The notes: generated from the sequence alone by a model not told the origin. DNA of 64,000 nucleotides from Styela clava (GCF_964204865.1 NC_135259.1:16430001-16494000), one strand, 5' to 3'; counted from the first letter of the stretch, positions 3,001-32,592 are shown. Numbers and translations: made by a program.

Positions 3001-4337
3001 GAACCTTCCATCGAAAAGAACTGATCTCCTTCATCAATATCTTGATAAGGCGGATTCGCCAAATAAAGATCTTCATTTCTTTGTCGATTACGTTTTCTTA
3101 ATTCTTCTCTGTCTTTATCCGACGGTGAGGTCATTGCATTTGTAGGTGATAATTTTATCCCATCATGGCATGTTGCGAAATTATTTGTCTGCATTGATAG
3201 AAATTCATCTCTTTGGGGGTCGGGACTTACTGAAACAGGAGTAGCAATTCCACTTGCAAATTCCGCTAATAGATGGACTTGGTGTGGTGTAAGGAACATA
3301 CTGCAGGATCCAAAAAAACATTCAGCATCAAGTTTCGGTGCAGATACATGTTCACTTTGCCGAATACGAAGTTTAACCTCTTGCCAGCCAAAAAATTTTC
3401 CAATTACAACTGGGCCATCGTATTTAGTTTCCTTCTGAGGCTTATCTAGTCTCTCCTCTATGATTTTCATCGTTTCAAACTCAGTGTGCGATATGTCAAT
3501 TGGTTCTGTACCTCGTGCTTCTGGGCTGCCAGTTGACCCAGGTGGAGTTGTTCTCAACTGCTCTGGAAATTCATCCATAAGTATTTTGATACCAGTGGCT
3601 CGAAAATGCTTGCATGTAATACTCTCCTGTTGGTAAACAGTTTTTTTGTCGCCAGTGTGTTGAGGTTTCTTCTCGTGCGCTGGGGAAGAGTCATTCTTGT
3701 CCTCCATTGTAATTTCGTCAAAATATTCAATACGCTCTATATGAACTTCAAGACCAATACCCGTTCCAGAATTTTCCGGCAAATGTTCAACGCGAATCAC
3801 CATATCTGTTAATGAAACCTTAATTTTTGATAGAACAGTTTCAATAGTTTGCGCAAAAACTTCAAGTCCCTCAAAAAGTCCTCCAGCAGATGTGTCTTGA
3901 GCTTCATCTTCTTCTTCTTTGAGGCAACCTTCAGCAAGTTGCATTGATGTTGTCATATTCCCAAGGCTTTTATACAAAGAATCAGTCATATTTCCATGAT
4001 CTACGTCAGTGCGATACTTCGGTTGAAGCGTCACTTCCAACCCCTTGATTTCAACTTTACAATTGTCACTCAGTAATGCAGACCATGGGATTGTGACGAC
4101 GATTGATCCAATAAAACCATCTACAATTTCCATAGGCACATGAGCCTGGTCTAACATTCCATTTAAAGCCCATATATCGAGTGCAACATCATTTACATAT
4201 CCAGTTCCGTTATATAAATCCACACTGAGCTGGTCTAAGCGAAGTTTCTCCTGCAGGAATTGTCCAAGATAGTGCTGTAATAAATATCGGCATGCTCGCT
4301 TTTTTATTGATTCAGGCCATGAAGTAAACCACGGCAT
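3..4337 (-). CDS. ATG2: Autophagy-related protein 2 (ATG2), N-terminal ~1445 codons; continues off the window edge
   Basis: The reverse complement from 4337 reads MPWFTSWPESIKKRACRYLLQHYLGQFLQEKLRLDQLSVDLYNGTG, the chorein-N start of ATG2A/B. Sequence at 1-300 reads in the same frame as ATG2-like ITEIHLNV..YRP..SFSLSSNIV..LNIIIDEA..DYACVVD. It is absent from the ORF track, consistent with no stop inside the window. Confidence 0.95.
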   Translation of the reverse strand, partial: MPWFTSWPESIKKRACRYLLQHYLGQFLQEKLRLDQLSVDLYNGTGYVNDVALDIWALNGMLDQAHVPMEIVDGFIGSIVVTIPWSALLSDNCKVEIKGLEVTLQPKYRTDVDHGNMTDSLYKSLGNMTTSMQLAEGCLKEEEDEAQDTSAGGLFEGLEVFAQTIETVLSKIKVSLTDMVIRVEHLPENSGTGIGLEVHIERIEYFDEITMEDKNDSSPAHEKKPQHTGDKKTVYQQESITCKHFRATGIKILMDEFPEQLRTTPPGSTGSPEARGTEPIDISHTEFETMKIIEERLDKPQKETKYDGPVVIGKFFGWQEVKLRIRQSEHVSAPKLDAECFFGSCSMFLTPHQVHLLAEFASGIATPVSVSPDPQRDEFLSMQTNNFATCHDGIKLSPTNAMTSPSDKDREELRKRNRQRNEDLYLANPPYQDIDEGDQFFSMEGSKLYSHVPQEAAEYENSEYGTSIYSQSTGFTPSSAYTNRSRMTPMHPSSKVMGGGHHHFGTEHAQSKYNGYGTSPHGLRRHHSSRSEEDKTTSNHCHYQFHIRAMAVTVLHINPLPPSASPTHSHKVDSSLTPQPSLESNVDSSNTSVTNCHVEMSNKYYALCETLLDETLKANKNINTLRSDLASVCCPHDHLRFTAAHIHLDSEQKTSQTSSSELSFGKAEITECLFIDAPRKSSLKSGKTKSSPVLKKKVSVHSEILVFDPKPYAGGLVKTAQSEMSPDIKISINNFDSHRSSKTTLHVHLSACESEVDISIVDRLSTLLYPPDSITKAQSNAASMFSPTSYAHSLPDAYSQQAAFNEALSEDNKDRQLNLNISASFLKINFRFPIADLRPEMERRPWYNRSLRDETLILEAHDIAFLTSSLGSGGQVGSRSGQKWQTHSSSSSQQRQEFEITVKDLHVLYSDEPERPKSFLRISQSPSVIGPLGGHVDANSGMDYPHIKVTINPSHEESNNVLLQGNTTLTEQPSPTKKKFENSEDPWLDEEFMSGSHNSSSDANPSPFSKRKVMYNSEEMILPGDSSEISAFSDHAISTSLISISIQLPAVNAFLVSKPFFENLYNRINNDILLWAPAAPRPHGKSKNLYDSRSVSYLSGSTFQIPDKGLDIASQLLVNSDEIDENMSSSCSDSDDTSTNYCRASLLGASRRTVKSVNENGMSVGKQSLISINTYIGCGRLSAKCNYICPDGSVSNSVHGEVVVMLKDANIFNVASYCGNPLLDYVCIQIKNFSLFHKADVPTLGAALPPVERLTADAPTHLDKVLTNCEEGISSTFSGKQNQETQNMIVLAIKLQTEEARPLKQCLLAAGINGVTLHHRFTKPGQSWLEQIMDLVDATDDQVLGYKPPSFITEIHLNVKNSAAIYRPVNMFPPVSAVVTATSFSLSSNIVAGAPMSALNIIIDEAKVYITDQQNMSYVDLVYDYACVVDVNFFDMCLKLRNENS

Positions 4338-5683
4338 TGTGTCTCTTTTATCTCTCTTTATAGCATAAATAAAATAGTAGTTAATCAATGTACTTAAGAA
4401 GCTGGATTCTGGAAAAGCAAAAACATTTTAGGATAGCAGCAAAAATCTGCAAACAAATCATTTCAATGGCAGTGATTTGAATAACTCATGTTGAATATTA
4501 TTATAAAACTAGTTGATAAACTGTAGTATAGTGAAGCAGCACAACCAAGAGTTATATCATAATTAGATGAACATACTAATATTACAGTAACAAAAAACAG
4601 GAAGTAAGATATAGTATTATAAGCAGTTTCTTTTTGATTGAGTCCATAATCATTAATAATCAGTATAAAGGCAACAAGTGAATGATAAAAACATATGGTG
4701 AGTAGCATTAAAAAGCATGCCAGGAAAGCAAACAAAGTTTGTAATAGAAAATTCTTTCAGATAATTGGTATCATTAGAAGAAGCATGAGAGTTTGAACAA
4801 AAACATGTCTATTCTCTCGCATGCGCAATTCAAAAAATAAGAATAAAAACGCTATCTTATTGAAAATAGTTCGACTGATTTGCAATATCTTACAGGGATT
4901 TTCATATATATATATATGTGCATATATATCAATATATACCTTATATATGAAGAATATCTGTAGTGTTCAATTAATACAACAGTTCGAATAATAAGCTTCT
5001 CCATGAAAAATATTTATATTTCAGTGTAACACTTTTATATGAACATGCAAATAGCATACAATTACTCCCTGCATCTGGAAGACTGAAATTTTGTTACCCA
5101 GTAGAAAATATACCATAATAAATTAGTTACTCTTCACTAAACGATATACAAGTACAAAAGTCTAACAACAGGAGTTATGCCAACACTTTATATCTGTGTA
5201 AAATACATACCAAACTAATTTTTAAAAAATTAAAATTTATAACAAAACAGTTTCAATTTAGTCCAATCGCATATTACAATTTTTCTCTATCCAATTGATA
5301 GTTCTCTCCCCGAAAATAAGGAAATATTCAAAATGAGAGTCGCTGTTTATACACAACCTCGTTGGAGTAAAAAACAGGTAAAATTGATGACAGAAAATTC
5401 GGACTATATGAAATCTTTTCTCATATCTATATTCCTTATACTATAAAACAATTGAAATAAACTCCTAACTATCCTACCATCTTTAGCTTGATTAAGTTGA
5501 TCAATTCAAAATGTCCAAAAAAACATATAGCCTGAGGGCATAAAACATCCAGACAAAATAAATCACAATAATCGCAGTAGTTATTTCTTTATGTAACTGT
5601 CTTTTATCTACATTGAAACTATCTTCACATTATTTAAATTACTCATTTAGTACAAGAGTAACTTATTGACAATATATTTGGAT

Positions 5684-6720
5684 TAGGGTTGCCACTTCTG
5701 GATACATTTTTTTTTCGAATCGAATCTCAAATCAAAAATTTTTGAATTGAATCTTTCCGAATCTGATTCCATTATTTTTTTTTATTTTTTTATTGCATGC
5801 GTATTTTTGCTCAAAGTCACAAAAAAGCTCAAATCTAGATGAGTAAAACTAAAAAATGGAATAAGCTATATAGCAAAGATGATAAGGGTTTTTCAGTGAA
5901 TAAGCCACACTCATTTCCATCATGATAAATGCATTGATGAAAAACTTGCTGTTGCAACTTATCTGTGAGTCTTACAATACTGAGTTATTATTGTGTTATA
6001 CTTGTATCAGGACTGAGGCAATTTTGAGAAAAACAATGTCCGTTATGGTTATGACATTTGCTAGAAAGAATTCGAAATGTTTTATTCCCGCTTGTATCGC
6101 GCTAACAAAATTAAAATTAAATACTACTTTTTTTGTAACAGCTGAAAAAAGACGTGTATGTACTATTACATTATGTCCTTCTGATTTCGTTTACCGCCAT
6201 TCGAGTGGAAGCCTGACAATTGCAAACAAAACAAATACATATTTTAGGATGAGAAACATGATTGTCAATTAACATTGCCGGCCGATGATTCAGTAATAGT
6301 TGTACGCGAAATATTTCAATCAGAGCAAAGTTTAAATTAAATTTCAATCAAAATTAAATATTATCTAGACGTCGGTAGCTGATTCTTTATCCAATCATGC
6401 CAGGGCGCACAATAACTTAGTCGCAGCGCAGGTGTGCTTTTGAAAATTTTCATCAAAATTGTCACAAATTTTTAGGTATACGATCTATTTAAATTCGCGC
6501 ATAATAGAAACTTAGGCTATTTAGTAGAAACTGAACGTGCAGTTTGGTGGAAATTACGCCACACATCATCTCGAGTGAAGCGTAAACGAGTGTGTTGTGC
6601 CGAACTTGAAACAAATGACGGCAGATAAGTAGAAAAAGTCAATCACGAAATCCTAAAACCGATTCGGAAAAGATGCGATTCGAATCGATCCGATTCGTAA
6701 ATCCAAAAGTGGCATCCCTA
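5684..6720. mobile_element. Non-autonomous hAT DNA transposon (1037 bp)
   Basis: 20-bp TIRs TAGGGTTGCCACTTCTGGAT / TAGGGATGCCACTTTTGGAT (18/20). Perfect 8-bp TSD ATTTGGAT at 5676-5683 and 6721-6728. Subterminal GAATC/GATTC motifs. Confidence 0.9.
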
Positions 6721-9880: not shown

Positions 9881-10648
9881 ACGTTACCTAACTTTACCAT
9901 AAAATACGTTTAACGGATAATAGCATTCCAGAGGCAAGTTGGCTAGTTTTTGATTTTATGAAACATTTTTGGACTGTTATGCTAATTTTATTTTTTCATT
10001 TCGTTCGTTTTTTGATAAGATGTAGTTTTCCATTTACTTCACAGTTTTTCGCGCTATACATCGCTATGCGTTGTTATCTACGACTTTGATCGTCATTTTT
10101 TTAGTTTCATATTCGCCTTGTCACTAGATTAGGTCCGATTCCGAATTGACAAAAAATTCATGACCCGAATGTGTCAATAATAAATTAGCTCCGAATTCCA
10201 AATTAAAAATGTGACTCGTTACTCATATTTCTGGTGATCTCATCTTGTGTCCTGGCATAGCCATTATATAACTAGTCTGGAAGCTTTAGCTTTCTTGCAT
10301 GACACCGAGTTGTTGACAGCGACATCTGGTGTTAGCGTGGGTTTTACACCTCTGTCGTCCGCTGGACAATCGAATCATACAGGCGTTGTTGGATTTTTTA
10401 CAGGGTATGTTTACAGATTTGAAGTTGCGCGAAGTTGACAAGATATAGAAAACTGAAAATAAAAATGCATAATATTATTATAAAATATGAATATATACCG
10501 TATATGCAGGAAAGGCAGTTCAGAATCCTATCGTAAGCCACTGCGATACAGGTACCGGTACCGGTACCGTAGTACCGTACCGGTGCTGTCAATTTTTAAT
10601 CACTTTTACGCCAGTAATTTGCTTTTCAGGTAAGTTACAGATTTAATT

Positions 10649-13600
10649 ATGGTTCCAAGCAAGCATCGATGGTCTGGATCATACTGCTGCATTCCTGGTT
10701 GCAAAAGTTCATCCGGGAATGGTGACCATTTGTATCATGTCCCGGATGGTAAGAATAAGAAATTTGGAATGCCTTCAAAGGAATGGGCACAAAAGTTTCA
10801 TCAGGTTTGTTTGGTATCGACAATTTTCCCCTTTCTTCCGTATTTCATTTCGGCCATCAAAAGCATGGGTGAAGTTTATGCTTCCATTTCAGAAATATGC
10901 TGCATGCAACTGATGTATGTGAAGTAGCCTAAAGAGTTTTCACTGTGTATTTTGTGCTTTATGCATTCTAATATTATGTATTCTAATTAACTCACTTATT
11001 TTGCAATATTAATTGCTAAGTAATTTTCTATTGCACCCAGGTTGTGTTCAAATATCGCTTCTCTCCTAATTTCAAAAGCAAAGTTGAGGATGGTAAGGTC
11101 AGAATTTGTGGTGATCATTTCGAGGATGAAGATATCCAAAAGACCAATAAAAGAAGTTGGATTAAGTTTGGAGCATTACCTACAAAATGTTTGCCAAGAA
11201 AATCGCATGAAGTATCTCCTTGCCCACCAAGAAGGATTGTTCCCAAATATTCATCCACAAATGACTGTCCATCTTCATCATCTCAATCTTCGATTTACAA
11301 TTCCATCAATGAAATAATTACAGCTTTTGAAAGTATTACCCTGAAAAACTGGAGAATGCATCGAATTAATGCACACAAAGCTCATTTCACATACTACTCT
11401 AATTACAGTTTACATGCGACACCGGAAATAAGCCTTTTAATTTGCCAATTTGATCAAAAACCATTTTACTTTTCTTGCGCTTTTGCTGGAGTTTACTCTT
11501 CCACTATATCATCGACACTAAGTTTGAGAGGAATTTCAATTTCAATCTTACTCAAAAACTTGGTTGATCTCACTCCTTGTTTTGGTTATAATGTTGTTTC
11601 CACAAAGAGTTCATGGATTCCCAGAAGTGTTGCAGAAATAGAAGATACTGGCGAAATTTCCTTGAAATTTAGGTAAGATATATTTGTGTTCAGTCAGATA
11701 TACTATACAGATATATAATTAATTGTATTTTTGTTGAATTTATCTTTGGTATTGTATCAATACAGATATATCAGCTCTCAATGTGAAATAGCGTATTCTT
11801 ATGCTGGTGCAAGACCCAACATCTGCTCTACTTGTATGCGTCTCCATGTGCATGATCAAGACAGTGACAAGCGAAAAACCAATAGATTCGAAAAACTAAA
11901 ACATGTTCCACTTGCTAATCGGTGTACTTATGCTACAGCTAGTAAAGAAAGATTGGTCGCACTAGCTAATATAAATAGACAGCGGTGAGTTATTATACGC
12001 AATGACCATTGACGAAGGCTTTTGTTTTCATTTACTTTCATGTTTTACAAACTATTTGCAGTTTAAGTGATCTTGAAAATGAGGTACGAAAGGCTGGCAT
12101 CATGGTTTCAACAAATATGTCCTCCATGATTGAAGGATTGTCAGAGGATGAGTTTTTAAAAGACTGGTGGGAAGTTCAGCAACATTTGCAAAAATCTAAC
12201 AGTAAATTTGGAAGGAGATATCCACCATCTATTATTCGGTTGGTAAATCTACTTCGGATTATTATTATTAAATTCATTCATCTCTCTGGCGATTTTGACT
12301 ACCTTTTTGCTTGTTATATTGATAGACCAGTTATTTAAAGACCTGGGAGATATTGTTTGTAGTTCACATCAATTGTTACTTTTAGTTACTGTCTCATGTT
12401 GTATGCAAAGTCACCATCTGCGTATAAATTCATACAAAGAATCATGGTCTTGCCTGCTCCACGTACACTGCAAAATAGCAGAAATGCTTTCTGTGGTTCA
12501 TGTGAATACGGATTTCAAAAATCCATTGCTGCGCGTATACAATTAGAAGCAGATTCTGCAGAGAAAGAATGTGACAAAATGGTTGTACTTGCAGTTGATG
12601 AAATGTCTATAAAAGGTAGTTCAGATTATACGTTTCAGTAGAATGAGTAGGCTTATTTTTTTTTTATTAATTTGGCTATGCAACTCCTGATGCAAAATCT
12701 ACTATTTTCTCTCCAGAATATACATGAATTTTCGCAGCTTAGAAAGAATTTTTTTTCTGTTTCAGAAGATCTTGTGTTCAAATCATCCACTGGGGAGGTT
12801 ACAGGTTATGTCGATTTTGGAAATGAATGCATTAACAATTTGTCCAAATCGTATAACAGGATTGCCAATCATGTCCTTGCGATATATGTTCGAGGTAAAG
12901 TTATTTTCAATAAGAGACGCCACTCCTATATTTTAGTGCCTGTGCACACATTCCATTTTTCACTGTACAATTGTGCAACTCCACGGTTCACACTTGGAAT
13001 ATAACAACCAGTAACTACTTCCTTTGCTTGAGGTGTTATGATAGCCGCCTAAAACTATATCATTATTTCACAGGCATCACAAATCACAAATTGGATGGCG
13101 TTCTTGCGTATTATCCCACGGCTGGAATCAATGCAGAGGATCTTGTCCTATTATTATGTGACCTTTTGGTGGAAATACCTCACCAGACTCATTGTGTTAT
13201 CCTTGCTATTGTTTGTAAGTTAATTTTTCAGTGGTTTCTGTTATACGTTGAATCATTTTGATCAGACATAGATAGGTATTTTTTTCAAGTTGTGTGCATT
13301 TAGCCATGGAAAAGCATGTAGTCAAGCATAGAACTATTTCTGTACAAAATTTGTAACAATGGTGTCACACAGATATTAGTGAAAGAAACACAGAAAGACG
13401 AGAAAGATACAGAAAAGTTGTAATAATTCATTGCATTCTTGTGTGTTATATTACAGCTAAGTCTAGTTAAGCACCTGAATATATCAGTATCAGAATTATA
13501 AAGATTTGGTTTCATTTTGAAGTTGATGGTCTTGCAGCAAATAGGTCAGCTATAAATTTAATGGCAGCCAAAGAGGACAGGATTCCTTACAGAATGAGAA

Positions 13601-14616
13601 ACCCTGCTGATGTTACTCGGTATACAAAACTTTTTATTTGTATGTGATGGCACTCATATGTCTCAAGGCATGGTTGTAATGCAAAAATTTTAAATTCAAA
13701 GGTACATCTACATGCTGCCGGATCCACCTCACCTTTTGAAAACCTGTCGTAATAATTTGCTCAGTACGAAAAAAAATCTGTGGAACGGAGAAGACATCTA
13801 TATGGAACCTGTAAAGCAGCTAATAAGGGTATGAATCTATATGTCGCTGTGAAAGCCTCTGCTTAACACTTTCATCATGAAATGAAATTTCTTTTTAGGA
13901 AGATCTAAAGCGGGGAGAGTTGAGGCTCTTTCATAAAATCACTGAATCACATATTAATCCGAGTCCCTGGGAAAAAATGAGTGTACGTATCGCAGCACAA
14001 ACTTTGTCTTATACTGTAGGTAAGATATATACTTCTTCAAGGTTAAAAAACAGCATGAATTTGATTCACCTCTATTTCAAACCAATAATTTTTTTTAGGT
14101 AAAGCCATAGAAAATCGAGGTTTTTCTGCTTTAGCAGAGTTTATTCTAAATTCAGACAAGTGGTTTGACTGCATGAACTCAGGATTCCAGAATAAAAATG
14201 CTAAACCATCTCGCCAGCCTTTTTACAACATCTATGATAAAAGAATAGAATGGCTTGAGAAAGATTTTCTAAAATACCTGGATGATTGGGAAGAAAAGGC
14301 GTACAGTCGGCCACTAGTAGGAGATGTTAATCGCCAGAAAATGCTGCTCAGTGATGCCACAAGAAATGGCTTGAGAATGGCATCCGTTTCAATGGCTGCG
14401 ATTATTCGTATTGTTCTGAGCAGTGGTGCGAGCTATGTTTTACCACGGCGTATTAACCAAGACCCTCTAGAGGCATATTTTGGTCATCAACGCGATCGAG
14501 GTTCCCGTACTGGAAACCCTACCTTAAGTTTGTTCACATCGAACTCCAGATCAATAGATGTTGTAAAATCTTTTAATAGTGTTTTTGGTTCTAATGTTGC
14601 GATTAAAAATGATTGA
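10649..14616 (+). CDS. THAP-domain P-element transposase, 11 exons, 848 aa, lacking the C-terminal domain
   Basis: Exons 10649-10804, 11041-11672, 11766-11984, 12062-12238, 12386-12615, 12766-12894, 13074-13214, 13523-13619, 13702-13828, 13899-14019 and 14099-14616 splice GT-AG in frame (2547 nt). Motifs: THAP C2CH (CCIPGC..W..ICGDHF..ALPT), HTH (SPSAY..LPAPRTL), catalytic DEM, VFDG and QDPLE, DPPHLLKTCRN, GTP-binding insertion (KITESH..KMSVRIAAQTLS) and FDCMNS. Confidence 0.93.
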
Positions 14617-15043
14617 TAAATTTCCAGAAGCTGAACTTTTTGCTTCGAATACATCCGGATTCTAGTACTAGTTCATTTTCTTAAATCGTTTCTAATTTTA
14701 GTGACTGGCCCGTCTCTGCTTTTAATAATAGTTTATGTATCCAAAATTGTATTTTTATATTAATCGATGGATCGCCAAAAATGCCTCTTATTCGAGAGAC
14801 TGAATTCAAAAAAAAAAGTTTCTCTTTCCCCGTATAATTTTATGGAACCTCATCCATGTTTTAAAAATAGCTATCAATTATTGGCCTGTGTATTTTTTGT
14901 TTCTCTCTACCAGGTCTGTGTAATTCTTCATATTAGTGTCAAAATTCCTGTTCAGTTTACCTATGGTATTTCTTATGCTAAAAAAACACAAAATGAAACT
15001 AGTTCCGTTGGCTAATTTTTATTGTTTTGGTATAATGATGAGA

Positions 15044-16090
15044 TTATTTGGAAAAACAATCCTTCAAAGCATCGCGAAGTCCATATGATTTGGGTCCAGT
15101 TGTTTTTTTTAACACGTTATTCTGCAGTTCAGTATTGCAATGGATATGGGCCCTTGTTCGAATAAATCTTCGCACGAGAATTGTCAGAATACTGGATTCA
15201 CTGGGGCTGAAGGGGTCCATGTCAATATTTCCAATAATACGTCGTTCATCTATTATCCTTTTGCAAACTTGAGACCGGAATTCACGTTCCACAGAGATAA
15301 GGAAGCGAACGAATGTTTCGGATGCTGATATGAGACCGCCTCTATTGCGTTCTTGAAAGCAATCAGGAAGATCGCGCACAGAAGCGTGGCTTTCGCACCA
15401 TGAAGCACCTTCTCCACCTAGACGCTTCATTCCCCATTTTAGCAATCCCCCAGCTAGGTACTCTATCACCTTTTCATCGTCTTCGGTTACAGAAATTTGC
15501 ATGAACGGCTCAGTTAGGGTTACCTGAAATGCTTCTTTTATAATTTTCGGTGCAGCAGTTTTGATTATTCGTTTTACATCCAAATGAGGTATTTCAGAAT
15601 TGTTAGAGTATGGCTTCTGCAATTTTTTAATGTATTCAGCTGTCATTTTAATTCTGGACTCTTCCCTAGAAATTTCCATCAAATCCGCCAAAACTTCCTC
15701 CCACAGTGGTGATTCCTGGTTCAACTGGATGTTCAAATCACTCAGTGCAATCTGCAGTTGCTTCTTGCAGTCAACGCTTCCGTAGTCAATTTCTACTACA
15801 GATATGCCCCATTTTTCTTCTATCTCGTCATCAAGCTGTAAAATAGTTTAGGTATAAACTCTGGTCTAAAAAAGTATATGCCGTAAGTATTTATATAAAG
15901 CAAAATTTGAATGTAATGTAAAAATACTGCCCAAATTTTTAGTCAAACCAAAGCCGGCTTCTGCATTCATATATTAAACTACTATTCATTATTTCAGGAC
16001 CAAATCCTATTTTAGTATAGCAACCAATTTTATATAACTCACGTCATCAAAAAATTCAAGCATTTCTTCCTCAGATAAATCCATTTTCAT
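15044..16090 (-). CDS. Second gene of the P element: 279-aa protein resembling the P-transposase C-terminal domain
   Basis: Exon 1, 16090-16043 (MKMDLSEEEMLEFFDD, donor GTGAGT), splices in frame to exon 2, 15835-15044 (acceptor TTTTACAG). Motifs EDDEKVIEYLAGGLLK, NRGGLISASETF..VEREF and LVRRFIRTR parallel the CTD motifs EYIAGY, GGL..PS..F...E..F and F..IR. Confidence 0.85.
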
Positions 16091-18403
16091 TCGAACTTTG
16101 AATAACGTTAGCAGCGAGCGGCCTAAAAATATAGAGCAGACGACGCCGTGGTTTTGGATTACCCACGCCAACACTAGATGACGCTGTGAACAACAGGTCA
16201 GTATACGGCCTTCCAGACTAGTTATATAATGGCTATGGTCCTGGTTTGCAGAACTATACCCGAAGCGCCGGTTTGTATAATACTTTAACAAATAGGATAG
16301 AAAAGGGGAGGTAGAGAACGGAGAATCGATTTTCTAAGTATTCGGGCACAAATCGAAATCGCGGTAATTCTTTGAAAAAAAAAACAATCGGACATCTCTA
16401 CATAAACTAGGACAGTAATTGAGTAGAAGGGTAGCTCTGTGAAAAGTGGAGGTGGTGACTCTTCTACGGCCCATCGAATTGGGCTTCAGGCCATGTGATT
16501 CAATTAGATGGACCGTGGCCACCACCCCTGTAGTCTGTGAAAGTCCGGAGGTAACAACGAAGGCAAAAGTAAAGTTAGATATTTTTTAAAAAGAGAAGGT
16601 GAAAAAGAAGAATCGGTTATGATTGACGAAAGCTACCTAACAAAATTGGAAATGGATCAACGAAAAGGCCGCTAACCGCCCGCAAATTTGTGCAACATAG
16701 GAACTGAGGTTCCCAGGATCAATCCAACAATGCGGATACGACTTGAAAGAGCTAGCTGGTGGCACTTGAGGGGATGAAGAATGTGAATAGGCATCATTTT
16801 CTAAAGAGTGGAGTTGGGATCCCTGGATTCGACCACTTTTTACGTCCCGATTCCAAAATTACTTCAGACTGCAGGACTGTAATATGTAGGAGGTAACTGT
16901 TTGCTGCCCTTTTGGCGGCGTTTTCAGCAAAACGTATCAACTTCATTCCGCGGATTTTATGGATCCCGAAACGAAATCTCGCGGAGGCCCATAACTTCAC
17001 GTTGCTAAACCTATTTTAACTTGTATACGGTATCGAAGTACACAGGTGGATTTTCTGTGTCTGACTTTTCTTGTGGTGTAGAAAGAAGTGGTGCTGAAAA
17101 TATCTACGATGTACTTACGAGTCACGGCTATCCAGAATACACAATTGAGGCTGAACATACTTTTCAGCTGGTGTGCTGGCTACTTTGTAAAAAATATCGG
17201 CAGTCGCCTCAGTGATAATAGCCTTGATGCGCTCGTGCTAACGTGTCAACATTACAAGAAATAAATGTGTCTACTTTTCAAATGTGTCGAATTTTCTAAT
17301 CCATAATCCATTTGAAATTACGAAATAGAGTACATGCCATTACTTCCCATTCACGATGTGTGCAATATGCCCGCGGGTTTGGTTTTTCAGGATAGGATTG
17401 TCTGATTTATTATCATATCAGGGCGGCATATTTTTTGGGGTAACTTTTTTTTCATTTCAAAGAATTGCGCACGATTATCTTTAAAGCCAAAATGAGTCAT
17501 TTTCGTCGAATCCCAGCTTTAGTTTAGTCATTTCAGGCAAAAGATCTTCCTATCACGGCTTTTAATGCTGATAATTTGTATTTATCTGAAACTCAAAATT
17601 AGTTTTATCCCATGTCTAGTTATTTCTTTATTTGGATCCATAAAAATATGCATGTTGTCTATGAATTGCTTTATTATGAGTCTTTAATTTGCCCACTCTT
17701 TACGATTTCTTATTTGTAAATTGATTTCATCAAACCATCTCGAGGCAAATAATATTTGCCTGCTTATTAATAGATTAAGATCAAGACATTGACTGACAAT
17801 AACGCATAGTTGATACAACTCTTAAACTTGACAGTGTCCATACCCTTTAAAGCAAGTATATCGATTAATAAGCATAGGCAGAGAAATATATATTATCCCG
17901 GACCAGGACTCAATAATCAAACATGTGTTGCAGTTACGGAGAATAATATTAATCACATCGTTACATTTTCGACAACAAACACAAATTTCATGAAATTGAT
18001 TAAAATAAAATGCAGATTACCTATGGAATTGGCAGTGCAAGATTACCAAGCAACAACCTTGGACATAACTTAAAACCTGGCAAGTGCATGGTTAATATTT
18101 CGAAAGATGTCACGCCATCGCATGCATAACCTTGATCAATAAGCATGTCGCGTTAATCAGAGTGTAAAAACAGAAATAGATTAGAGAAAAGTAACATATA
18201 TATTACTAATGAGTTGAAGGTTTTGACAAAGCTTGGAATAACGGAAATCCCGCAGATTTATCATCTAGGCATTTGGGAAAAGTATCGTTCACATGATATT
18301 ACAAACTGTATATATACTTGATGTGGATGAGCGTGAAAATAAATCAATGCACCAGCCGATATTGTCATTATCAGACACGTAAAAAAAAATTAGTGTATGG
18401 TAA

Positions 18404-22415: not shown

Positions 22416-25400
22416 CACGTCACAACAAAGCGTTGCGAAGTTTTCTTTATTAAGGATTAATCTGAAAAGCTAAAAACTGTAGAATTGAACGTTCGAAAAG
22501 CTTTAAACGAAGTTCAAAACACCAAAAATTTCTTGAAGTTGTTGTTTATCAAACTAATTTATTTTAAATAATTTGCTATATTGTCAACGACAATTTCAGT
22601 TGAAGTATTTCTTCATTTGAACACCGGTATTTTGTAATTCCCCTTCGTTTTCACAAATCATACTTCCCTGCAGTTGACTATTCTTTCATATTTCTCTAGC
22701 AGTTACTAATTAAATGCGTTCTATCGGTTTGCGCTTATTGACCCGCTACTCAATATTCGTCGTATTAGATATATTAGCGCATCGATTGGCCTACATTTGT
22801 CATAGATGACGACGTCGCTTTCTCTCTAAAGCCGATTGAAGAAGTGAGAAATAACATTTAAAATAATGTAACGTGTACGTTTCAAGTGACGCATGAACAC
22901 GCACCTTCTAACAGGCGCGATTGATTATTGCCACCGGGGTAAACTTCCCAGTTTTATTATCACTAGTTGTTAGTTTAGTTGTTATACAACTAGCGTGGCT
23001 GTTATTCAACGAATATTATCACCAAGAGGAGTGGAAGATTTTTGTTTTAGCAACTTACACTGCTTATATCCATATGAACTATCGATATGAACAATATTTT
23101 TCACTGATGTTGCGTATAAATGGAAACGAAAAATGAATAACAATGAATTTTCCCCAGAACCTTGACCTCAAAAAAAAGTCCTATGCTTATGCTTACAGTG
23201 TTTTGCGAGTTGGTTCTTGCAAACTAGTTCATGTCCAAAACTTTAATTCAAAATATTTGAACATCTGTCATTTGAAGGTACTATTAGCCAATCTATGCCT
23301 AAGACATCGCAGCTTTCCATGACTAATTTAAACCAAGTTGACAAAACCACGCAAGCTAATGCTTACAGCCATGTCTTAGAATCCGTCTGGGCGGAAAAGT
23401 GTCTTGAGCGCCAGCTGAATTTTAATTGTTACGTTCCTGTTAATATCTCGCTGATTAGCCAATATTACAGATATATGCAAGAAGTCAATAGTCGAGGAAA
23501 CATCCATCGAAAAACTCAATATACGATGTTTCACAATTACTAATATTTTATACCTTTCTGATTGTAGTTTTCGCTTCACTGAGTCGTCTCGCAATGTATA
23601 TATTGATTCTTTAAAGATCATCGTACCCATTAGGTTTAGTATTGACTTGTTCACCGCCCAATATCACACATAAATACGAATCGCAATTATCACGTTGATA
23701 TCAATGTGGCAAATCTCCTTAATTCCTTCAACGACACATTTTTTGTTTTAATGATTATATTTTCCACGGTTAAAATTTGAAGATTGTTTCGAAGGTGATT
23801 CTAGACATCGATTCTCATACTGAGCATGGTTGTTGGGACAATATTTCCTGTCCAATTTGCCCGTCGGATTTGTGCTCTAAATTTCATTGCTATACGTTAT
23901 TTATTTTAAAGTAACCAACAACTTCCTCTTTCAAGTTTATGGAAGTTACAGGACACCAGGTAAACAATTTCTGATATATATTTTTGAAACTGAATTGCTT
24001 AATGACACATGCGAAAATTAGATTTTATTGCGTTACGATAAAAGTTGGGTTATTGAAAAATGCACACCAAGGTATATTGTCATATTAATTTGAAACGATG
24101 TTTCTCGTCAATGTGAACCATTGACAAAAAATTAGAATAAAAAATGAAACATTGACAATCAACATTTCTGTTCTCGGGATCACTACATGGTTATACAAAT
24201 AATTTAGGAGACAATTTTATATTCATCTATTTTATGGAAATATATAATATTAGTGAATATAAATTATCGATATCTATGGCTGAGGGTAATCTACTAGCGA
24301 TATATAGGCTACATCCCTATCTGTAACTGTTTTTGCGCATGTTAGGCCATATCTTAATGCAATCTGATCATAAATAAATTACGTTGGGTAACCTCATAGC
24401 AGAGAGATTACCCAGTCACCAGTTATAGATTTAGTGAGCGAATTGTCAATTTTTACGTAAATTTTATTGAAGATAAAAATGGCGTGAATTGTCAAAGGAT
24501 AAACAGTGAATTAGATGAAGCAATAGTCAACTTGGCTGAATTTACCCTAATAAACCGCTATACCGTGCAAGATATCATGCAATATATATGCTTAATAACA
24601 AATTGGCGAACATACCTACCTCTGCGAATTGTCCGTCCGTTGAAATCACGGGAGAGTTAAACTCCGATATGAACAAGATTCTATTGAAACGAGTTTAACC
24701 GCAGACATAACTGAACTGTTTAATTTTAAAAATAGATTTTTCCGCCACAGTGCACTTGACAGGTAACTAACTACTCTTACGTCATTTTGGAAACGTGGCC
24801 TATGGATAAATGAATTTATTTTTCGGTGGGTCCCCGAAATTTGAACCGTTTTATTCCCTGAAAATTATATCGCACGCATTAATATAAGCTTTAGATTGAA
24901 ATAAATTGAGCGACAATTGGTTACAACGGTATTCCGCGTTGATGTAATTACTATTCGATTGTTTGGTATAGGATTTTTGTGATTCAGTTTACCGTCGAAT
25001 TTTGAAGTTGTAACTGTACTTATATTATATTATATATTAGAATATATTATACACCAATGAGAATGTAGAATACGTCAGACAGGCATTGCCGTGCACTCAA
25101 AATCGAATTCAATTTTGGACGTTTTAACCTTTAAAGCCTGGAGTCATCCGCACACTTTTTCGCCAACTCTATGTAAAACACATGGGCTGCTAAACCAGAT
25201 TCCCTATTCAGCAGGAATTACTAATCAAAAATAAACAAATAATTGTGACGTCAAATTTAATACTCGTGGAGAGTGGAGTCGGCAGTGACCTCCAACCTCA
25301 AATACATCAGTGCGCGCTCGATTGATGATTGAAGTTTGAATCACGCTTGATTGTCAGGGATTGAGTCAGGGTTATGCAACTTTATTAGCTGTTTGGCGTT

Positions 25401-26778
25401 GCAGTTCAATATCTGTATGCGTTATATATTGTTTTCTATCCAAAGTGTAACCACAATGAAAGGCGATAGTATCGGCTCAGTTGTGTAAATTTTCGACTTG
25501 GCCAACATTGGCAATAGTGAATGAAATCTGCAATAGCGCGTCAAATAAAGGCGGATAAGAGGGAAATTTTGTAGAGCAATGAGCGACTGAAAAACTGCGG
25601 AGAGTTGCTAGTTGTAGTCACTCAGTTATTAACGCTAGGTGTTCCAATATATAAATAAATCAGTTGCGGTTAATTCCGCGTTTTGTTCGTACCTTATGTA
25701 CGCCCCCGGACAAGCTTCATCACCTCACAAATAGCGGCGGCCACATTCTTTTATAGATTGTAAACAGAGTAGGTTGGCTTTGATTTGGGTAAAATTGAGT
25801 CAGGGAGGCTTTCATCGTTCCATTATAGCTTTTGTTATTTAATAGGCAACATCGGAAACTACGTCAAAAATAATATCGATAATGCCATCTAGGAACTGCC
25901 GCAATCAGTATTCGTTACTTGTCAGTCATTGAGTTCTGAACAAAAAACGTCATATTCTGAGTCACGCAGGTTTAGATTAGATAACCAAGTCAGACATGAC
26001 GCTCAAGCCACTTCTTTTAATAGACTGTGTCGTCTATTGATTCTATACTCTAGTCTAAACTAAAATATGGTTTCAAATATTTATCCATGTGTATTGATAT
26101 ATGGAAAAAACCATATACGCATTTCTTAATTAATCCCGAGGTAATTAATCTTAGTGGTGGGGAGTCGAGCCACCTTCAAGGCATGATATGCCTTCTCCGT
26201 TATTAATGTATTGAATGTATCCAAATGTATTCAATCCATTAACTGTTATCAATTCAGCACCGCTGGCTTCACACGTCATATTATTCATACTCATATGATT
26301 TAAACTCAGTAACAAATATCGAACAAGGAAGTCGCTACGCGGATAGACTTTATACTAATGAGTCTCGAAATAGAATAACTGCACTGATATGTATATATAC
26401 ACGAAGGCCTAAAGAAATGATATATAGCATTTATTCACTGTAAACGAGTGTCACTTTGGCTCAAACGATCAAAATAAATAATGATAAAATTAGAGCAGCT
26501 TTGGAATACTCAAATGCCTCTTTCGGTTCATTTGTTGCCAAAAAGTTACCCAAACCTGTTATAGTAACCGAGTGTGCACTGGGTTTGGTTTCGTAATTCT
26601 CTCTCGCCGAAACTAAATTAGATACAGTATTAATTATAATTAACACTTGGAAAAAAAGAACTCCTGTCACACTACTGAAAGTAATATCGCTAACATACAA
26701 AACTTCCATTCAAACTCTACCTTTCTGTTCAAAGGCCAAAACAGTATAACAAATATAAAAACCTATCAATCTGCAGCA

Positions 26779-27300
26779 ATGAATGACTACATTGAAACCA
26801 AAAATCTTCTGCCATCTGAAATACGCTTTGTAAAAAGCAAAGTTCGCTCCCATTTCACAACTGGAAAATCAGCCAATGACATCGCAGAAACACTCATGGG
26901 GAAATCGTGGAACAAGTTGGAAGTCAAGGACTTAGATGTCATTCGCGTATTCCGACGAGAAGGGAGATATTATACATTGGATGATCTACTACTCTACGTG
27001 TTTCGTGTTGCCCAATATAACGACGCAATTCGAAAAATAAAGGTTAATGTGGTTAGCAAAAGATCACTGAGGTCAGAAAAATTGTCATTGGCTGGAGGTC
27101 GTAATATCATTTTAATTGGCGACGAAACACTACCCCACTGCAAACCACATTGGCTCAAAGAGACTGGTTTTACCGTATTCGATGAAACGAAAGTTCCGAC
27201 CCCAATAACTACTGTCATGGATTATTCATTTCTTGAAGGATCAACAAGTTCTTATGGTGAAACGGTATGTATCAATAATCTTGGGCAGTTTATATACTAA
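26779..27300 (+). CDS. Uncharacterised protein with a degenerate ParB/sulfiredoxin-like fold (copy 1)
   Basis: LLPSEIRF..KV.SHF..GKS..DIAE.L..LDVIRVFR..YYTLDDLLLYVFR..KIKV follows the pattern, as I recall it, of small invertebrate ParB/Srx-like proteins (PS.IRFSQ..F..G..I.V..YS.DNRRL.VF). A possible donor GTATGT near 27265 may change the C-terminus. Confidence 0.55.
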   Translation: MNDYIETKNLLPSEIRFVKSKVRSHFTTGKSANDIAETLMGKSWNKLEVKDLDVIRVFRREGRYYTLDDLLLYVFRVAQYNDAIRKIKVNVVSKRSLRSEKLSLAGGRNIILIGDETLPHCKPHWLKETGFTVFDETKVPTPITTVMDYSFLEGSTSSYGETVCINNLGQFIY

Positions 27301-27302
27301 AG

Positions 27303-27458
27303 CAGAGGTTCTCGAACTTTTTTAGGCCACGCCCCCTTTTTAGAATTTATCAAAAAATAACCAGATAACAATAAGGTACAAATAACAGATTGTAAGGCGA
27401 AAGTATGTTTTTATTGAAAAATACGTGGATGGAATCGTTAACCGTTTGTGAACCACTG
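27303..27458. mobile_element. Charlie-type hAT MITE (copy in duplication unit 1)
   Basis: CAGAGGTTCTC...GTGAACCACTG termini; degenerate 8-bp TSD TACTAAAG/TTTTAAAG. Confidence 0.6.
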
Positions 27459-30400
27459 TTTTAAAGGATTGTTTGCGAAAAACTATTTATAATGTCTCGG
27501 CATAGTAGAGATGATCGACTAATTCACCAGTATTAAAAACTGTTAAATCCGAAATCAGACAAATTCTCGGTTTTGTTATCACAAAGTTTTCGTTGCAAAC
27601 CATTATTTATTATTAGTGCTGTGTGCCAGTTTGGGATGCTTTATTAGCATTGAAGCCGGTATTTTCAAACACCCGGGAGTAAAAATATCTATATTCTTGG
27701 TGGCGATATCGAATCATAAATTTCAACAATAAATACGCATTACTTATAATTATCGATGCATTCTGAATCCACAATAAAAGAACATACGTCTGGATTTTTG
27801 TTATCAAAAACTCACTTCCTCGTAGGTTGGAGTGCGAGTCAAAATTTCTTCAAGATACTGGAATCGAAAGTCGAAATTTTGCAATCGCAGCCGTTTTTTA
27901 GATGACCCGGAGTTTGGAGTAATGTGTAAATTTTCTCAGCCATGAGAAAAAAGCACTATGATAATATTGATCGTGCTCAATATTTTATTTTTGTTTTTGA
28001 AGCGTTATATTACACCCACTTAGAACCAGCCCACACATTGCAGTTTCGACATGTAAACTCGTGTAGTTAGATTTATTGAAACTGCTTCACTTTTTAAAAC
28101 CACCCAAACAAACAAACTTATTAGATTTAATATTGCTATTTATAACCAGAACAAACTAATCGACGGTGAACAAGTTTCTGTTGCTGAACAAAGTATGTTG
28201 TGGAAAATGTTCTACGAGATTTGGGAAAATGTTTGTCGTTGGATTCGCCAAAAAGTTTCTAACAGAAGGAAACAAAGAAATCAAATAATATAACTTTGGC
28301 CGGTAACTAGGTAACCTGACTTGCACGAAACAACGGAGAAGAGGCAAGTTTTGGTTGGAACGCTATATTCAGATTGATATTCATAACGGGCATGTCCTCG
28401 GAAAATTAGTTTTATCGCCTCTGATGTAAAACTTATTGGCACCTTGCGAATGACTAATTTAAACCAAGTTGACAAAACCACGCAAGCTAATGCTTACAGC
28501 CATGTCTTAGAATCCGTCTGGGCGGAAAAGTGTCTTGAGCGCCAGCTGAATTTTACTTGTTACGTTCCTGTTAATATCTCGCTGATTAGCCAATATTACA
28601 CATGTATGCAAGAAGTCAATAGTCGAGGAAACATCCATCGAAAAACTCAATATACGATGTTGCACAATTACTAATATTTTATACCTTTCTGATTGTAGTT
28701 TTCGCTTCACTGAGTCGTCTCGCAATGTATATATTGATTCTTTAAAGATCATCGTACCCATTAGGTTTAGTATTGACTTGTTCACCGCCCAATATCACAC
28801 ATAAATACGAATCGCAATTATCACGTTGATATCAATGTGGCAAATCTCCTTAATTCCTTCAACGACACATTTTTTGTTTTAATGATTATATTTTCCACGG
28901 TTAAAATTTGAAGATTGTTTCGAAGGTGATTCTAGACATCGATTCTCATACTGAGCATGGTTGTTGGGACAATATTTCCTGTCCAATTTGCCCGTCGGCT
29001 TTGTGCTCTAAATTTCATTGCTATACGTTATTTATTTTAAAGTAACCAACAACTTCCTCTTCCAAGTTTATGGAAGTTACAGGACACCAGGTAAACAATT
29101 TCTGATATTTTTGAAACTGAATTGCTTAATGACTCATGCGAAAATTAGATGTTACGATAAAAGATGCACACCAAGGTATATTGTCATATTAAATTGAAAC
29201 GATGTTTCTCGTCAATGTGAACCATTGACAAAAAATTAGAATAAAAAATGAAACATTGACAATCAACATTTCTGTTCTCGGGATCACTACATGGTTATAC
29301 AAATAATTTAGGAGACAATTTTATATTCATCTATTTTATGGAAATATATAGTATTAGTGAATATAAATTATCGATATCTATGGCTGAGGGTAATCTACTA
29401 GCGATATATAGGCTACACCCCTATCTGTAACTGTTTTTGCGCATGTTCGGCCATATCTTAATGCAATCTGATCATAAATAAATTACGTTGGGTAACCTCA
29501 TAGCAGAGAGATTACCCAGTCACCAGTTATAGATTTAGTGAGCGAATTGTCAATTTTTACGTAAATTTTATTGAAGATAAAAATGGCGTGAATTGTCAAA
29601 GGATAAACAGTGAATTAGATGAAGCAATAGTCAACTTGGCTGAATTTACCCTAATAAACCGCTATACCGTGCAAGATATCATGCAATACATATGCTTAAT
29701 AATAAATTGGCGAACATACCTACCTCTGCGAATTGTCCGTCCGTTGAAATCACGGGAGAGTTAAACTCCGATATGAACAAGATTCTATTGAAACGAGTTT
29801 AACCGCAGACATAACTGAACTGTTTAATTTTAAAAATAGATTTTTCCGCCACAGTGCACTTGACAGGTAACTAACTACTCTTACGTCATTTTGGAAACGT
29901 GGCCTATGGATAAATGAATTTATTTTTCGGTGGGTCCCCGAAATTTGAACCGTTTTATTCCCTGAAAATTATATCGCACGCATTAATATAAGCTTTAGAT
30001 TGAAATAAATTGGGCGACAATTGGTTACAACGGTATTGCGCGTTGATGTAATTACTATTCGATTGTTTGGTATAGGATTTTTGTGATTCAGTTTACCGTC
30101 GAATTTTGAAGTTGTAACTGTACTTATATTATATTATATTAAATATTAGAATATATTATACACCAATGAGAATGTAGAATACGTCAGACAGGCATTGCCG
30201 TGCACTCAAAATCAAATTCAATTTTGGACGTTTTAACATAAAGAGCCTGGAGTCATCCGCACACTTTTTCGCCAACTCTATGTAAAACACATGGGCTGCT
30301 AAACCACATCCCCTATTCAGGAGGAATTACTAATCAAAAATAAACAAATAATTGTGACGTCAAATTTAATACTCGTGGAGAGTGGAGTCGGCAGTGACCT

Positions 30401-31912
30401 CCAACCTCAAATACATCAGTGCGCGCTCGATTGATGATTGAAGTTTGAATCACGCTTGATTGTCAGGGATTGAGTCAGGGTTATGCAACGTTATTAGCTG
30501 TTTGGCGTTGCAGTTCAATATCTGTATGCGTTATATATTGTTTTCTATCCAAAGTGTAACCACAATGAAAGGCGATAGTATCGGCTCAGTTGTGTAAATT
30601 TTCGACTTGGCCAACATTGGCAATAGTGAATGAAATTTGCAATGGCGCGTCAAATAAAGGCGGATAAGAGGGAAATTTTGTAGAGCAATGAGCGACTGAA
30701 AAACTGCGGAGAGTTGCTAGTTGTAGTCACCCAGTTATTAACGCTAGGTGTTCCAATATATAAATAAATCAGTTGCGGTTAATTCCGCGTTTTGTTCGTA
30801 CCTTATGTACGCCCCCGGACAAGCTTCATCACCTCACAAATAGCGGCGGCCACATTCTTTTATAGATTGTAAACAGAGTAGGTTGGCTTTGATTTGGGTA
30901 AAATTGAATCAGGGAGGCTTTCATCGTTCCATTTTAGCTTTTGTTATTTAATAGGCAACATCGGAAACTACGTCAAAAATAATATCGATAATGCCATCTA
31001 GGAACTGCCGCAATCAGTATTCGTTACTTGTCAGTCATTGAGTTCTGAACAAAAAACGTCATATTCTGAGTCACGCAGGTTTAGATTAGATAACCAAGTC
31101 AGACATGACGCTCAAGCCACTTCTTTTAATAGACTGTGTCGTCTATTGATTCTATACTCTAGTCTAAACTAAAATATGGTTTCAAATATTTATCCATGTG
31201 TATTGATATATGGAAAAAACCATATACGCATTTCTTAATTAATCCCGAGGTAATTAATCCTAGTGGTGGGGAGTCGAGCCACCTTCAAGGCATGATATGC
31301 CTTCTCCGTTATTAATGTATTGAATGTATCCAAATGTATTCAATCCATTAACTGTTATCAATTCAGCACCGCTGGCTTCACACGTCATATTATTCATACT
31401 CATATGATTTAAACTCAGTAACAAATATCGAACAAGGAAGTCGCTACGCGGATAGACTTTATACTAATGAGTCTCGATGATGAATTAGGATTGACTTAAA
31501 AATAGAATAACTGCACTGATATATATATATATACACGAAGGCCTAAAGAAATGATATATAGCATTTATTCACTGTAAACGAGTGTCACTTTGGCTCAAAC
31601 GATCAAAATAAATAATGATAAAATTAGAGCAGCTTTGGAATACTCAAATGCCTCTTTCGGTTCATTTGTTGCCAAAAAGTTACCCAAACCTGTTATAGTA
31701 ACCGAGTGTGCACTGGGTTTGGTTTCGTAATTCTCTCTCGCCGAAACTAAATTAGATACAGTATTAATTATAATTAACACTTGGAAAAAAAGAACTCCTG
31801 TCACACTACTGAAAGTAATATCGCTAACATACAAAACTTCCATTCAAACTCTACCTTTCTGTTCAAAGGCCAAAACAGTATAACAAATATAAAAACCTAT
31901 CAATCTGCAGCA

Positions 31913-32434
31913 ATGAATGACTACATTGAAACCAAAAATCTTCTGCCATCTGAAATACGCTTTGTAAAAAGCAAAGTTCGCTCCCATTTCACAACTGGAA
32001 AATCAGCCAATGACATCGCAGAAACACTCATGGGGAAATCGTGGAACAAGTTGGAAGTCAAGGACTTAGATGTCATTCGCGTATTCCGACGAGAAGGGAG
32101 ATATTATACATTGGATGATCTACTACTCTACGCGTTTCGTGTTGCCCAATATAACGACGCAATTCGAAAAATAAAGGTTAATGTGGTTAGCAAAAGATCA
32201 CTGAGGTCAGAAAAATTGTCATTGGCTGGAGGTCGTAATATCATTTTAATTGGCGACGAAACACTACCCCACTGCAAACCACGTTGGCTCAAAGAGACTG
32301 GTTTTACCGTATTCGATGAAACGGAAGTTCCGACCCCAATAATTACTGTCATGGATTATTCATTTCTTGAAGGAGCAACAAGTTCTTCTGGTGAAACGGT
32401 ATGTACCAATAATCTTGGGCAGTTTATATACTAA
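31913..32434 (+). CDS. Uncharacterised degenerate ParB/Srx-like protein (copy 2)
   Basis: Duplicate of 26779-27300 with 7 amino-acid differences. Confidence 0.55.
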   Translation: MNDYIETKNLLPSEIRFVKSKVRSHFTTGKSANDIAETLMGKSWNKLEVKDLDVIRVFRREGRYYTLDDLLLYAFRVAQYNDAIRKIKVNVVSKRSLRSEKLSLAGGRNIILIGDETLPHCKPRWLKETGFTVFDETEVPTPIITVMDYSFLEGATSSSGETVCTNNLGQFIY

Positions 32435-32436
32435 AG

Positions 32437-32592
32437 CAGAGGTTCTCGAACTTTTTTAGGCCGCGCCCCCTTTTTAGAATTTATCAAAAAATAACCAGAT
32501 AACAATAAGGTACAAATAACAGATTGTAAGGCGAAAGTATGTTTTTATTGAAAAATACGTGGATGGAATCGTTAACCGGTTGTGAACCACTG
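32437..32592. mobile_element. Charlie-type hAT MITE (copy in duplication unit 2)
   Basis: Duplicate of 27303-27458. Confidence 0.6.

Follow-up and report, generated by a model that had tools for sequence, protein, structure and literature searches.

The locus described here raises the question of whether the transposase of a P-superfamily DNA transposon can be divided between two genes. It lies within a stretch of 64,000 nucleotides from Styela clava (GCF_964204865.1 NC_135259.1:16430001-16494000), which was analysed as a whole and is referred to below as the window, with positions counted from its first nucleotide. A first-pass annotation, made from the sequence alone, had placed a P-type element at 10256-16237 and had claimed that its transposase gene (gene 1) lacks the C-terminal domain (CTD), this domain being encoded by a separate, convergent gene (gene 2). 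This proposal was supported by the fold predicted for the gene 2 product, by the point at which gene 1 ends and by the conservation of the gene pair. It is probable that the locus is a two-gene P element, in which a CTD-less transposase and the product of a separate convergent CTD gene assemble into one enzyme. The convergent layout is kept in two divergent families.

The element and a transposase gene without the CTD

The element was found to be intact and to carry two spliced, open genes facing each other, as had been claimed, and has perfect terminal inverted repeats (TIRs) and a 7-bp target site duplication (TSD); a second insertion was also identified elsewhere in the genome (see below). 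Beyond the TIRs, an imperfect likeness of the two element ends reaches ~87 bp (76%). Members of the P superfamily have a TSD of 7-8 bp (Repbase classification). The boundaries are as follows:

10256-16237: P-type DNA transposon of Styela clava, 5,982 bp, intact
10249-10255: left copy of the TSD, 7 bp, GTCCTGG
10256-10283, plus strand: left TIR, 28 bp, 100% complementary to 16210-16237
16210-16237, minus strand: right TIR, 28 bp, 100% complementary to the left arm
16238-16244: right copy of the TSD, 7 bp, GTCCTGG

Gene 1 consists of open blocks on the plus strand, running from an ATG at 10649 to a stop codon at 14614-14616. It was modelled as 11 exons with canonical GT-AG introns and consistent phases, the exon sum of 2,544 nt (848 codons) agreeing with the 848 aa given earlier. 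The exon model was guided by homology to a second, less interrupted family in the same genome (family 2, described below), and its length was checked through the phases. The exons of gene 1 are:

10649-10804, plus strand: exon 1, with the ATG and the first half of the THAP zinc finger (CxxC)
11041-11672, plus strand: exon 2, second THAP half followed by a linker and coiled-coil region; donor GTAAGA at 11673
11766-11984, plus strand: exon 3, whose acceptor is the least certain splice site
12062-12238, plus strand: exon 4, start of the helix-turn-helix (HTH); boundaries picked by frame and motif
12386-12615, plus strand: exon 5, end of the HTH and start of RNase H, with the putative first catalytic D in a DEMSIK motif
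12766-12894, plus strand: exon 6, N-terminal part of RNase H (PF21787, E 7e-4)
13074-13214, plus strand: exon 7, N-terminal part of RNase H
13523-13619, plus strand: exon 8, with the putative second catalytic D in an FDGLAANRS motif
13702-13828, plus strand: exon 9, GTP-binding insertion domain with a DPPHLLK motif
13899-14019, plus strand: exon 10, GTP-binding insertion domain (PF21788, E 0.005); donor at 14020
14099-14616, plus strand: exon 11, end of the GTP-binding domain (GBD), C-terminal part of RNase H, where QDPLE holds the catalytic E, then a tail of 50 aa up to the stop at 14614-14616

All searches with gene 1 were made exon by exon, and since each exon carries only a fragment of a domain, the Pfam matches all fall below the cut-off. 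Their order across the exons is the expected one (THAP, Tnp_P_element HTH, TNP-like RNaseH_N, GBD and RNaseH_C), with PF21787, PF21788 and PF21789 matched in succession. The THAP match (Pfam E 0.0022) lies on exon 2 and covers profile positions 49-85, the CxxC...CxxH signature being split over exons 1 and 2, and exon 5 matches both PF12017 (E 0.0021) and PF21787 (E 5e-4). For the last exon the sole PDB sequence match found with phmmer was the Drosophila P transposase (6p5a_A, residues 432-557, E 1.6e-4), in an alignment that sets the glutamate of QDPLE on the catalytic E531. The probable second catalytic aspartate (FDGLAANRS) was placed via the alignment of family 2 to the segment around D303, and the likely first (DEMSIK) was assigned by its position inside the PF21787 match, so that both rest on motif and homology and not on direct alignment of the window copy. 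The THAP, HTH, GTP-binding insertion and DDE residues previously attributed to gene 1 were thus recovered. Among the characters of the P superfamily, the element has the THAP domain, the split RNase H with a GTP-binding insertion, the DDE triad, and short TIRs with a 7-bp TSD; its catalytic core and CTD are not on one polypeptide.

The gene 1 protein extends for 50 aa beyond QDPLE and then ends, in agreement with the ~50 aa stated previously. Residue 150 of the last exon corresponds to P residue 557 in the alignment and the stop follows 21 aa further on, at the end of the Drosophila RNase H domain and inside a linker for which the cryo-EM structure of the P transposase shows disorder. The junction of open reading frames (ORFs) 2 and 3 in the Drosophila P element is presumably at about residue 561. 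A 66-kDa Drosophila protein without the CTD acts as a repressor, and transposition is catalyzed only by the 87-kDa product (PMC7776569); from these masses and a length of ~751 residues the truncation is placed near residue 570. As gene 1 ends close to this point, it may by itself be repressor-like.

The interval 14617-15166, downstream of the gene 1 stop, was scanned for a polyadenylation signal, and the first canonical AATAAA on the plus strand was found at 15161-15166, within the gene 2 coding region. If this signal is used, the convergent transcripts overlap by >100 nt and could form double-stranded RNA.

Gene 2 and the CTD of the P transposase

The CTD of the Drosophila P transposase is entirely alpha-helical and ends in a basic helix; it is tethered to the RNase H domain through a flexible, disordered linker, packs against another subunit and contacts both transposon and target DNA (PMC7776569). 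Gene 2 of the window element has a product of 279 aa, encoded on the minus strand as annotated earlier and containing the motifs then quoted, which is 100% identical to the NCBI entry 'uncharacterized protein LOC120327130 [Styela clava]'. Its features are:

16039-16086, minus strand: exon 1, ATG and 15 further codons, acidic; GTGAGT donor
15836-16038, minus strand: intron, GTGAGT...TTTTACAG
15044-15835, minus strand: exon 2, 263 codons and the stop at 15046-15044
15018-15023, minus strand: AATAAA signal, 21 nt downstream of the stop
15515-15781, minus strand: residues 35-123, a conserved four-helix domain with no specific structural relative
15107-15496, minus strand: residues 130-259, with the fold of the P transposase CTD

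The exon junction is continuous in the NCBI 279-aa model and also in a distant relative, P0012. In this standalone protein, which is 31% identical, the exon-1 peptide and its own start methionine are recognisable, and the retention of this peptide is evidence for the splice as well as for a start of gene 2 that is its own. When 1.84 billion representative proteins were searched with a HMMER profile, 35 relatives of 64-298 aa were recovered, derived from Logan and ENA assemblies, of which about a dozen (241-298 aa) span the whole length including the N-terminal domain; no long or fused protein was present among the 35. A JGI metagenome scan using gene 2 motifs returned no relative. Conservation in the family alignment was seen in the C-terminal half and also in the N-terminal half, and the ~130-aa N-terminal extension noted in the first-pass annotation proved to be real, comprising a conserved four-helix bundle at residues ~35-123.

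An AlphaFold2 model of gene 2 was built on the family alignment (mean predicted local distance difference test score, pLDDT, 82.5) and has three parts, namely a disordered acidic head (1-34), the four-helix domain (~35-123) and a helical C-terminal domain (~130-262). Its top Foldseek match was 6p5a_B (prob 1.00; template modelling score, TM, 0.60 on the target). The all-helical fold superposes on this chain, and the match spans 111-112 of the 118 residues of the solved CTD (6p5a chain B, 617-734). Common to gene 2 and the CTD is also the order of motifs, with an 'EY-x-x-G' helix, a 'G-x-L-x-x-P' turn and a basic 'R/K-I/T-R' helix. In an ESM Atlas look-alike search, the Atlas's own model had a pLDDT of only 0.37.

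The 6p5a deposition itself files the one Drosophila polypeptide as two chains, A (569 residues) and B (617-734). Chain A has its counterpart in gene 1 and chain B in the second half of gene 2, and the break between the two genes falls in the unresolved linker of the P transposase.

Other copies and a second family

Three full-length copies were identified in the genome, located on C13 (the window element), C8 and C14. The C14 copy has an identity of ~96%, and the C8 copy is 99.6% identical to that of the window, with nine mismatches and a few indels, and bears a different 7-bp TSD, GTTATAT. Two insertions that are nearly identical but occupy unrelated sites, each flanked by a TSD of its own, show that transposition was recent, and the differing flanks and TSDs argue against a segmental duplication linking C8 and C13. 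Both genes are open in these two copies. The first-pass annotation had allowed for copies without gene 2 or with it fused to gene 1; instead, Styela clava copies other than the window element were found to retain the pair, and in family 2 the two are tail to tail.

Family 2 was found by genome searches with the gene 2 profile and the RNaseH_N and RNaseH_C models. It is much more divergent (gene 2 profile E 1e-5 to 1e-9), and a gene-2-like ORF and a transposase lie tail to tail on opposite strands at four loci, as judged by coordinates:

C18: gene-2-like ORF 4779448-4779993, plus strand; transposase domains 4780805-4781851, minus strand
C6: gene-2-like ORF 18978569-18979036, plus strand; transposase domains 18980580-18981614, minus strand
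C19: gene-2-like ORF 15771900-15772427, minus strand; transposase domains 15770327-15771005, plus strand
C2: gene-2-like ORF 30759410-30759769, minus strand; transposase domains 30757862-30758487, plus strand

At the C2 locus (L057) the transposase ORF ends ~65 aa past QDPLE, at position 9393 of the locus, and the opposing ORF ends at 9411, the two stop codons being 18 bp apart; the C19 locus has the same transposase end. On PF21787 family 2 scores 75-79 bits, which is above the cut-off, and its gene 2 is a separate NCBI protein model (LOC144420000, 292 aa; P0062). That both families end gene 1 alike and keep gene 2 adjacent suggests a continuing need for the CTD function, with its supply coming in trans.

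The family-2 gene 2 opens with an extra exon (L054:8838-9020, plus strand) which encodes a C2H2 zinc finger at P0062 residues 28-50 (CxxC-x12-HxxxH; Pfam zf-C2H2_4, E 3e-4, below the cut-off). Gene 2 of the window has no such exon, and the finger may be a DNA-binding module added to the detached CTD. A decayed piece of the same gene, ~270 bp long and with several stops, was found in at least 841 candidate places genome-wide. These pieces correspond to residues 4-90 of the 146-aa query, which is the CTD part (e.g., C5:7757100-7757372 and C10:3074504-3074776), and probably belong to an abundant non-autonomous derivative of family 2 resembling a miniature inverted-repeat transposable element.

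P-like ORFs of 822-834 aa with both RNase H halves also occur in Styela clava. Uninterrupted ORFs of this type, of 662-834 aa, were observed at C9:2461643, C13:4852861, C6:11274734, C10:888370 and C9:18244561. They apparently have no introns and represent canonical P/THAP9-like genes or elements, which would be useful outgroups for dating the split. At two loci, on C13 and C5, a weak match of the gene 2 profile (E 3e-4 and 1.6e-3) lies downstream of RNaseH_N, ~1.6 kb away and in the same orientation; by their coordinates these loci have the canonical colinear CTD arrangement.

Approximately ten further copies of the window family (L004-L013; ~82% identity) share one internal deletion and keep element positions 1-288, 479-1622 and 3960-5982 (e.g., C5:19441830-19446002, C3:12686351-12690095, C2:15567047-15571175 and C19:15578381-15582878). 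The THAP exons and the gene 2 region are present in them and the catalytic core is missing, which is reminiscent of the KP-type deletion derivatives of Drosophila. Their gene 2 mostly contains stops or frameshifts, yet several are represented by NCBI protein models (P0002-P0006), of which P0002 is an intact paralogue of 272 aa. Fragments of the element (positions 1-252, 479-647, 4904-5008 and 5002-5982) also recur about a dozen times on C19:5.35-6.73 Mb at a spacing of ~100 kb (L015-L020, L028 and L031-L040), which suggests a decayed copy embedded in a large tandem or segmental duplication.

An ORF of 311 aa at L021:1063-1995 on the plus strand (C9:8240736-8241668) has a P-CTD-like 'LEYLGGYTIKR' helix, matches PF12596 (E 0.011) and ends with the terminal 'GLRGDLKK' motif of gene 2; a near copy lies at C4:13244788 (L022). 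No RNase H match was listed near the L021 ORF, which might represent a third type of standalone CTD-like gene or else one that has been domesticated.

Assembly, alternatives and known two-gene systems

Under the proposed arrangement, gene 1 would be read inward from the left end to give the 848-aa protein with its THAP, HTH, RNase H and GTP-binding insertion, and gene 2 inward from the right end to give the 279-aa protein with its acidic tail, four-helix domain and all-helical CTD. The gene 2 protein would join the gene 1 dimer non-covalently and take up the position of the Drosophila CTD, flanked by the RNase H domain of one subunit and by the GTP-binding domain of its partner, touching transposon as well as target DNA; excision and integration would in that case require both proteins. 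Such a split should be tolerated, as the break is in a disordered linker and beside a domain that works against the neighbouring subunit. The lost covalent link may have been replaced by the four-helix domain of gene 2 or by the 50-aa tail of gene 1, these being the docking candidates. Gene 1 alone would resemble the 66-kDa repressor, and transcription of gene 2 could serve as the on/off switch, the role held by intron-3 splicing in flies. A complex prediction for the last exon of gene 1 with gene 2 gave a score of 0.27 against a mark of 0.34, which speaks neither for binding nor against it.

Several results weigh against the assignment of gene 2 as the CTD of a working enzyme. Gene 2 and the Drosophila CTD have no direct sequence significance. 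The likeness between them had been put forward for checking by structure and by profile, and it held for structure (the Foldseek match to 6p5a_B) but not for the Pfam model of the domain, PF12596 (Tnp_P_element_C), which matched neither gene 2 nor any of the 24 family members even at E<=10; no P-element Pfam family matched any of these at that level, gene 2 itself matching no Pfam family whatever, and a search of the whole Styela clava genome with PF12596 gave nothing above its gathering threshold of 22.6 bits. Among PDB sequences the P transposase was found neither by phmmer with gene 2 nor by hmmsearch with the family profile, the matches being chance ones only (aquarius, E 0.53; histidinol dehydrogenase, E 0.043). 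The two structure models have most rows of their input alignments in common and are for this reason not fully independent, and gene 2 is still open only in the two youngest copies. As regards PF12596, the matches seen here all fall on model positions 61-101, an 'EYIAGY'-type helix, and the model appears to cover mostly the linker and the first CTD helix and not the solved CTD, which would explain its silence on gene 2. P0063, a 262-aa protein from another organism and a relative of the family-2 gene 2, has PF12596 as its sole Pfam match (16.7 bits, E 0.011, below the cut-off). With the weak gene 2 profile matches at the two colinear loci, it provides a bridge in sequence to canonical CTDs.

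That single match, together with the extent of the fold match over all but a few residues of the solved domain and the common order of motifs, speaks against the view that the fold similarity is convergent or generic and that gene 2 is an unrelated helical protein, whether acquired from the host or newly arisen as an accessory gene. As the gene moreover sits in an element whose transposase is without exactly that domain, we regard such a coincidence as very unlikely. Somewhat better placed, although still unlikely, is the suggestion that gene 2 derives from the CTD but has become accessory or regulatory, for instance as an inhibitor competing for DNA or as a targeting or nuclear-import factor, gene 1 alone being catalytically competent. 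All catalytic parts are indeed in gene 1, the four-helix domain and the family-2 C2H2 exon are extras which the enzyme core does not need, and the internally deleted copies keep the gene 2 region. However, the CTD-less Drosophila protein represses and cannot transpose, and the CTD touches both DNAs in the strand-transfer complex (PMC7776569). The same gene 1 end is moreover found with an adjoining gene 2 in both families.

A full-length transposase might also be restored by trans-splicing of the gene 1 pre-mRNA to the acceptor of gene 2 exon 2 on the opposite strand. Trans-splicing from opposite strands is known for mod(mdg4) in Drosophila, and tunicates have an active trans-splicing machinery; in addition, exon 1 of gene 2 accounts for no more than 16 aa, and a strong acceptor precedes exon 2, which starts in phase 0. 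Nevertheless, this route has very little in its favour once it is considered that the exon-1 peptide and start methionine are conserved in the standalone P0012, that the in-frame end of gene 1 is conserved in the two families, that NCBI models gene 2 as a separate protein in both, and that no chimeric or long protein was present in the 1.84 billion representatives. Even less credible is a dead rearrangement, in which the 3' part of a normal P element was inverted and lost its function. An inversion is the simplest origin of the layout, and older copies are mostly decayed, but two near-identical insertions occupy different sites with perfect TIRs and their own 7-bp TSDs, and both genes are open in both. 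The layout is also kept in a divergent family, and relatives of gene 2 are conserved at full length in other organisms at ~30% identity. A dead inversion is contradicted by the two fresh insertions and the conservation of the layout.

Whereas the two-gene reading itself is probable, it is possible but rather doubtful that the split represents an ancient, selected regulatory design, in which gene 1 is a constitutive DNA-binding, repressor-like protein and the separately transcribed gene 2 is a limiting activator with a four-helix docking module, the lineage being present in several animal groups. If the split is such a design, control of the gene 2 promoter would replace in sea squirts the germline-specific splicing of intron 3 in Drosophila.

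The Styela clava element shares with the Drosophila P transposase (87 kDa; 6P5A/6PE2) and vertebrate THAP9 the THAP domain, the HTH, an RNase H split by a GTP-binding insertion and a helical CTD, with an aligned catalytic glutamate, a matching CTD fold, short TIRs and a TSD in the 7-8 bp range. It differs from them in that the CTD is carried by a polypeptide of its own, whose gene lies on the opposite strand and has a start, an intron and a poly(A) signal to itself, and in that an additional conserved four-helix domain stands before the CTD; the TSD measures 7 bp and not 8. The 66-kDa repressor, which is the product of intron-3 retention, is likewise a P transposase cut after the RNase H domain and without a CTD, and the end of gene 1 is close to its own. 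Flies make both forms from one gene by regulated splicing, whereas gene 1 of Styela gives the truncated form only.

Two genes within one DNA transposon are known from other superfamilies. In maize MuDR, mudrA and mudrB are convergent genes between the TIRs, each transcribed inward, but the element belongs to the Mutator superfamily and MURB is not a detached domain of MURA. PIF/Harbinger transposases require a second element-encoded protein with a DNA-contacting function; this partner is Myb/SANT-like and not a fragment of an ancestral transposase, and the superfamily is again a different one. In ProtoRAG, RAG1-like and RAG2-like genes are arranged tail to tail between TIRs and form a heteromeric recombinase, but the RAG2-like protein is an unrelated kelch/PHD protein and not a split-off domain, and the superfamily is Transib-derived. 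The parallel with ProtoRAG drawn in the first-pass annotation therefore stands for the convergent layout and for nothing beyond it, since convergent genes transcribed from the ends are known also from MuDR. To our knowledge, in none of the two-gene eukaryotic DNA transposons MuDR, PIF/Harbinger, ProtoRAG and ISL2EU is the partner a detached transposase domain. The full-text literature yielded no account of a P transposase that is split or made by two genes, with Repbase and a paper on Ciona P elements (Kimbacher 2009) outside the coverage of that search.

If the two-gene reading is true, the gene of a eukaryotic cut-and-paste transposase has here undergone fission, and a separate promoter, as opposed to regulated splicing, would be a second, independent route to the choice between repressor and enzyme. 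The role of the CTD has so far been known mainly from one cryo-EM structure and from repression by the CTD-less 66-kDa protein, and a natural supply of the domain in trans would make this role directly testable. Because the copies are of recent origin (99.6% identical), the natural sequences can be used unaltered in such tests, and a compact two-component system of this kind could become a controllable transposition tool.

Elsewhere in the window, positions 23319-33466 contain a tandem duplication with a unit of ~5.13 kb in two copies, which are 96-100% identical and unrelated to the transposon.

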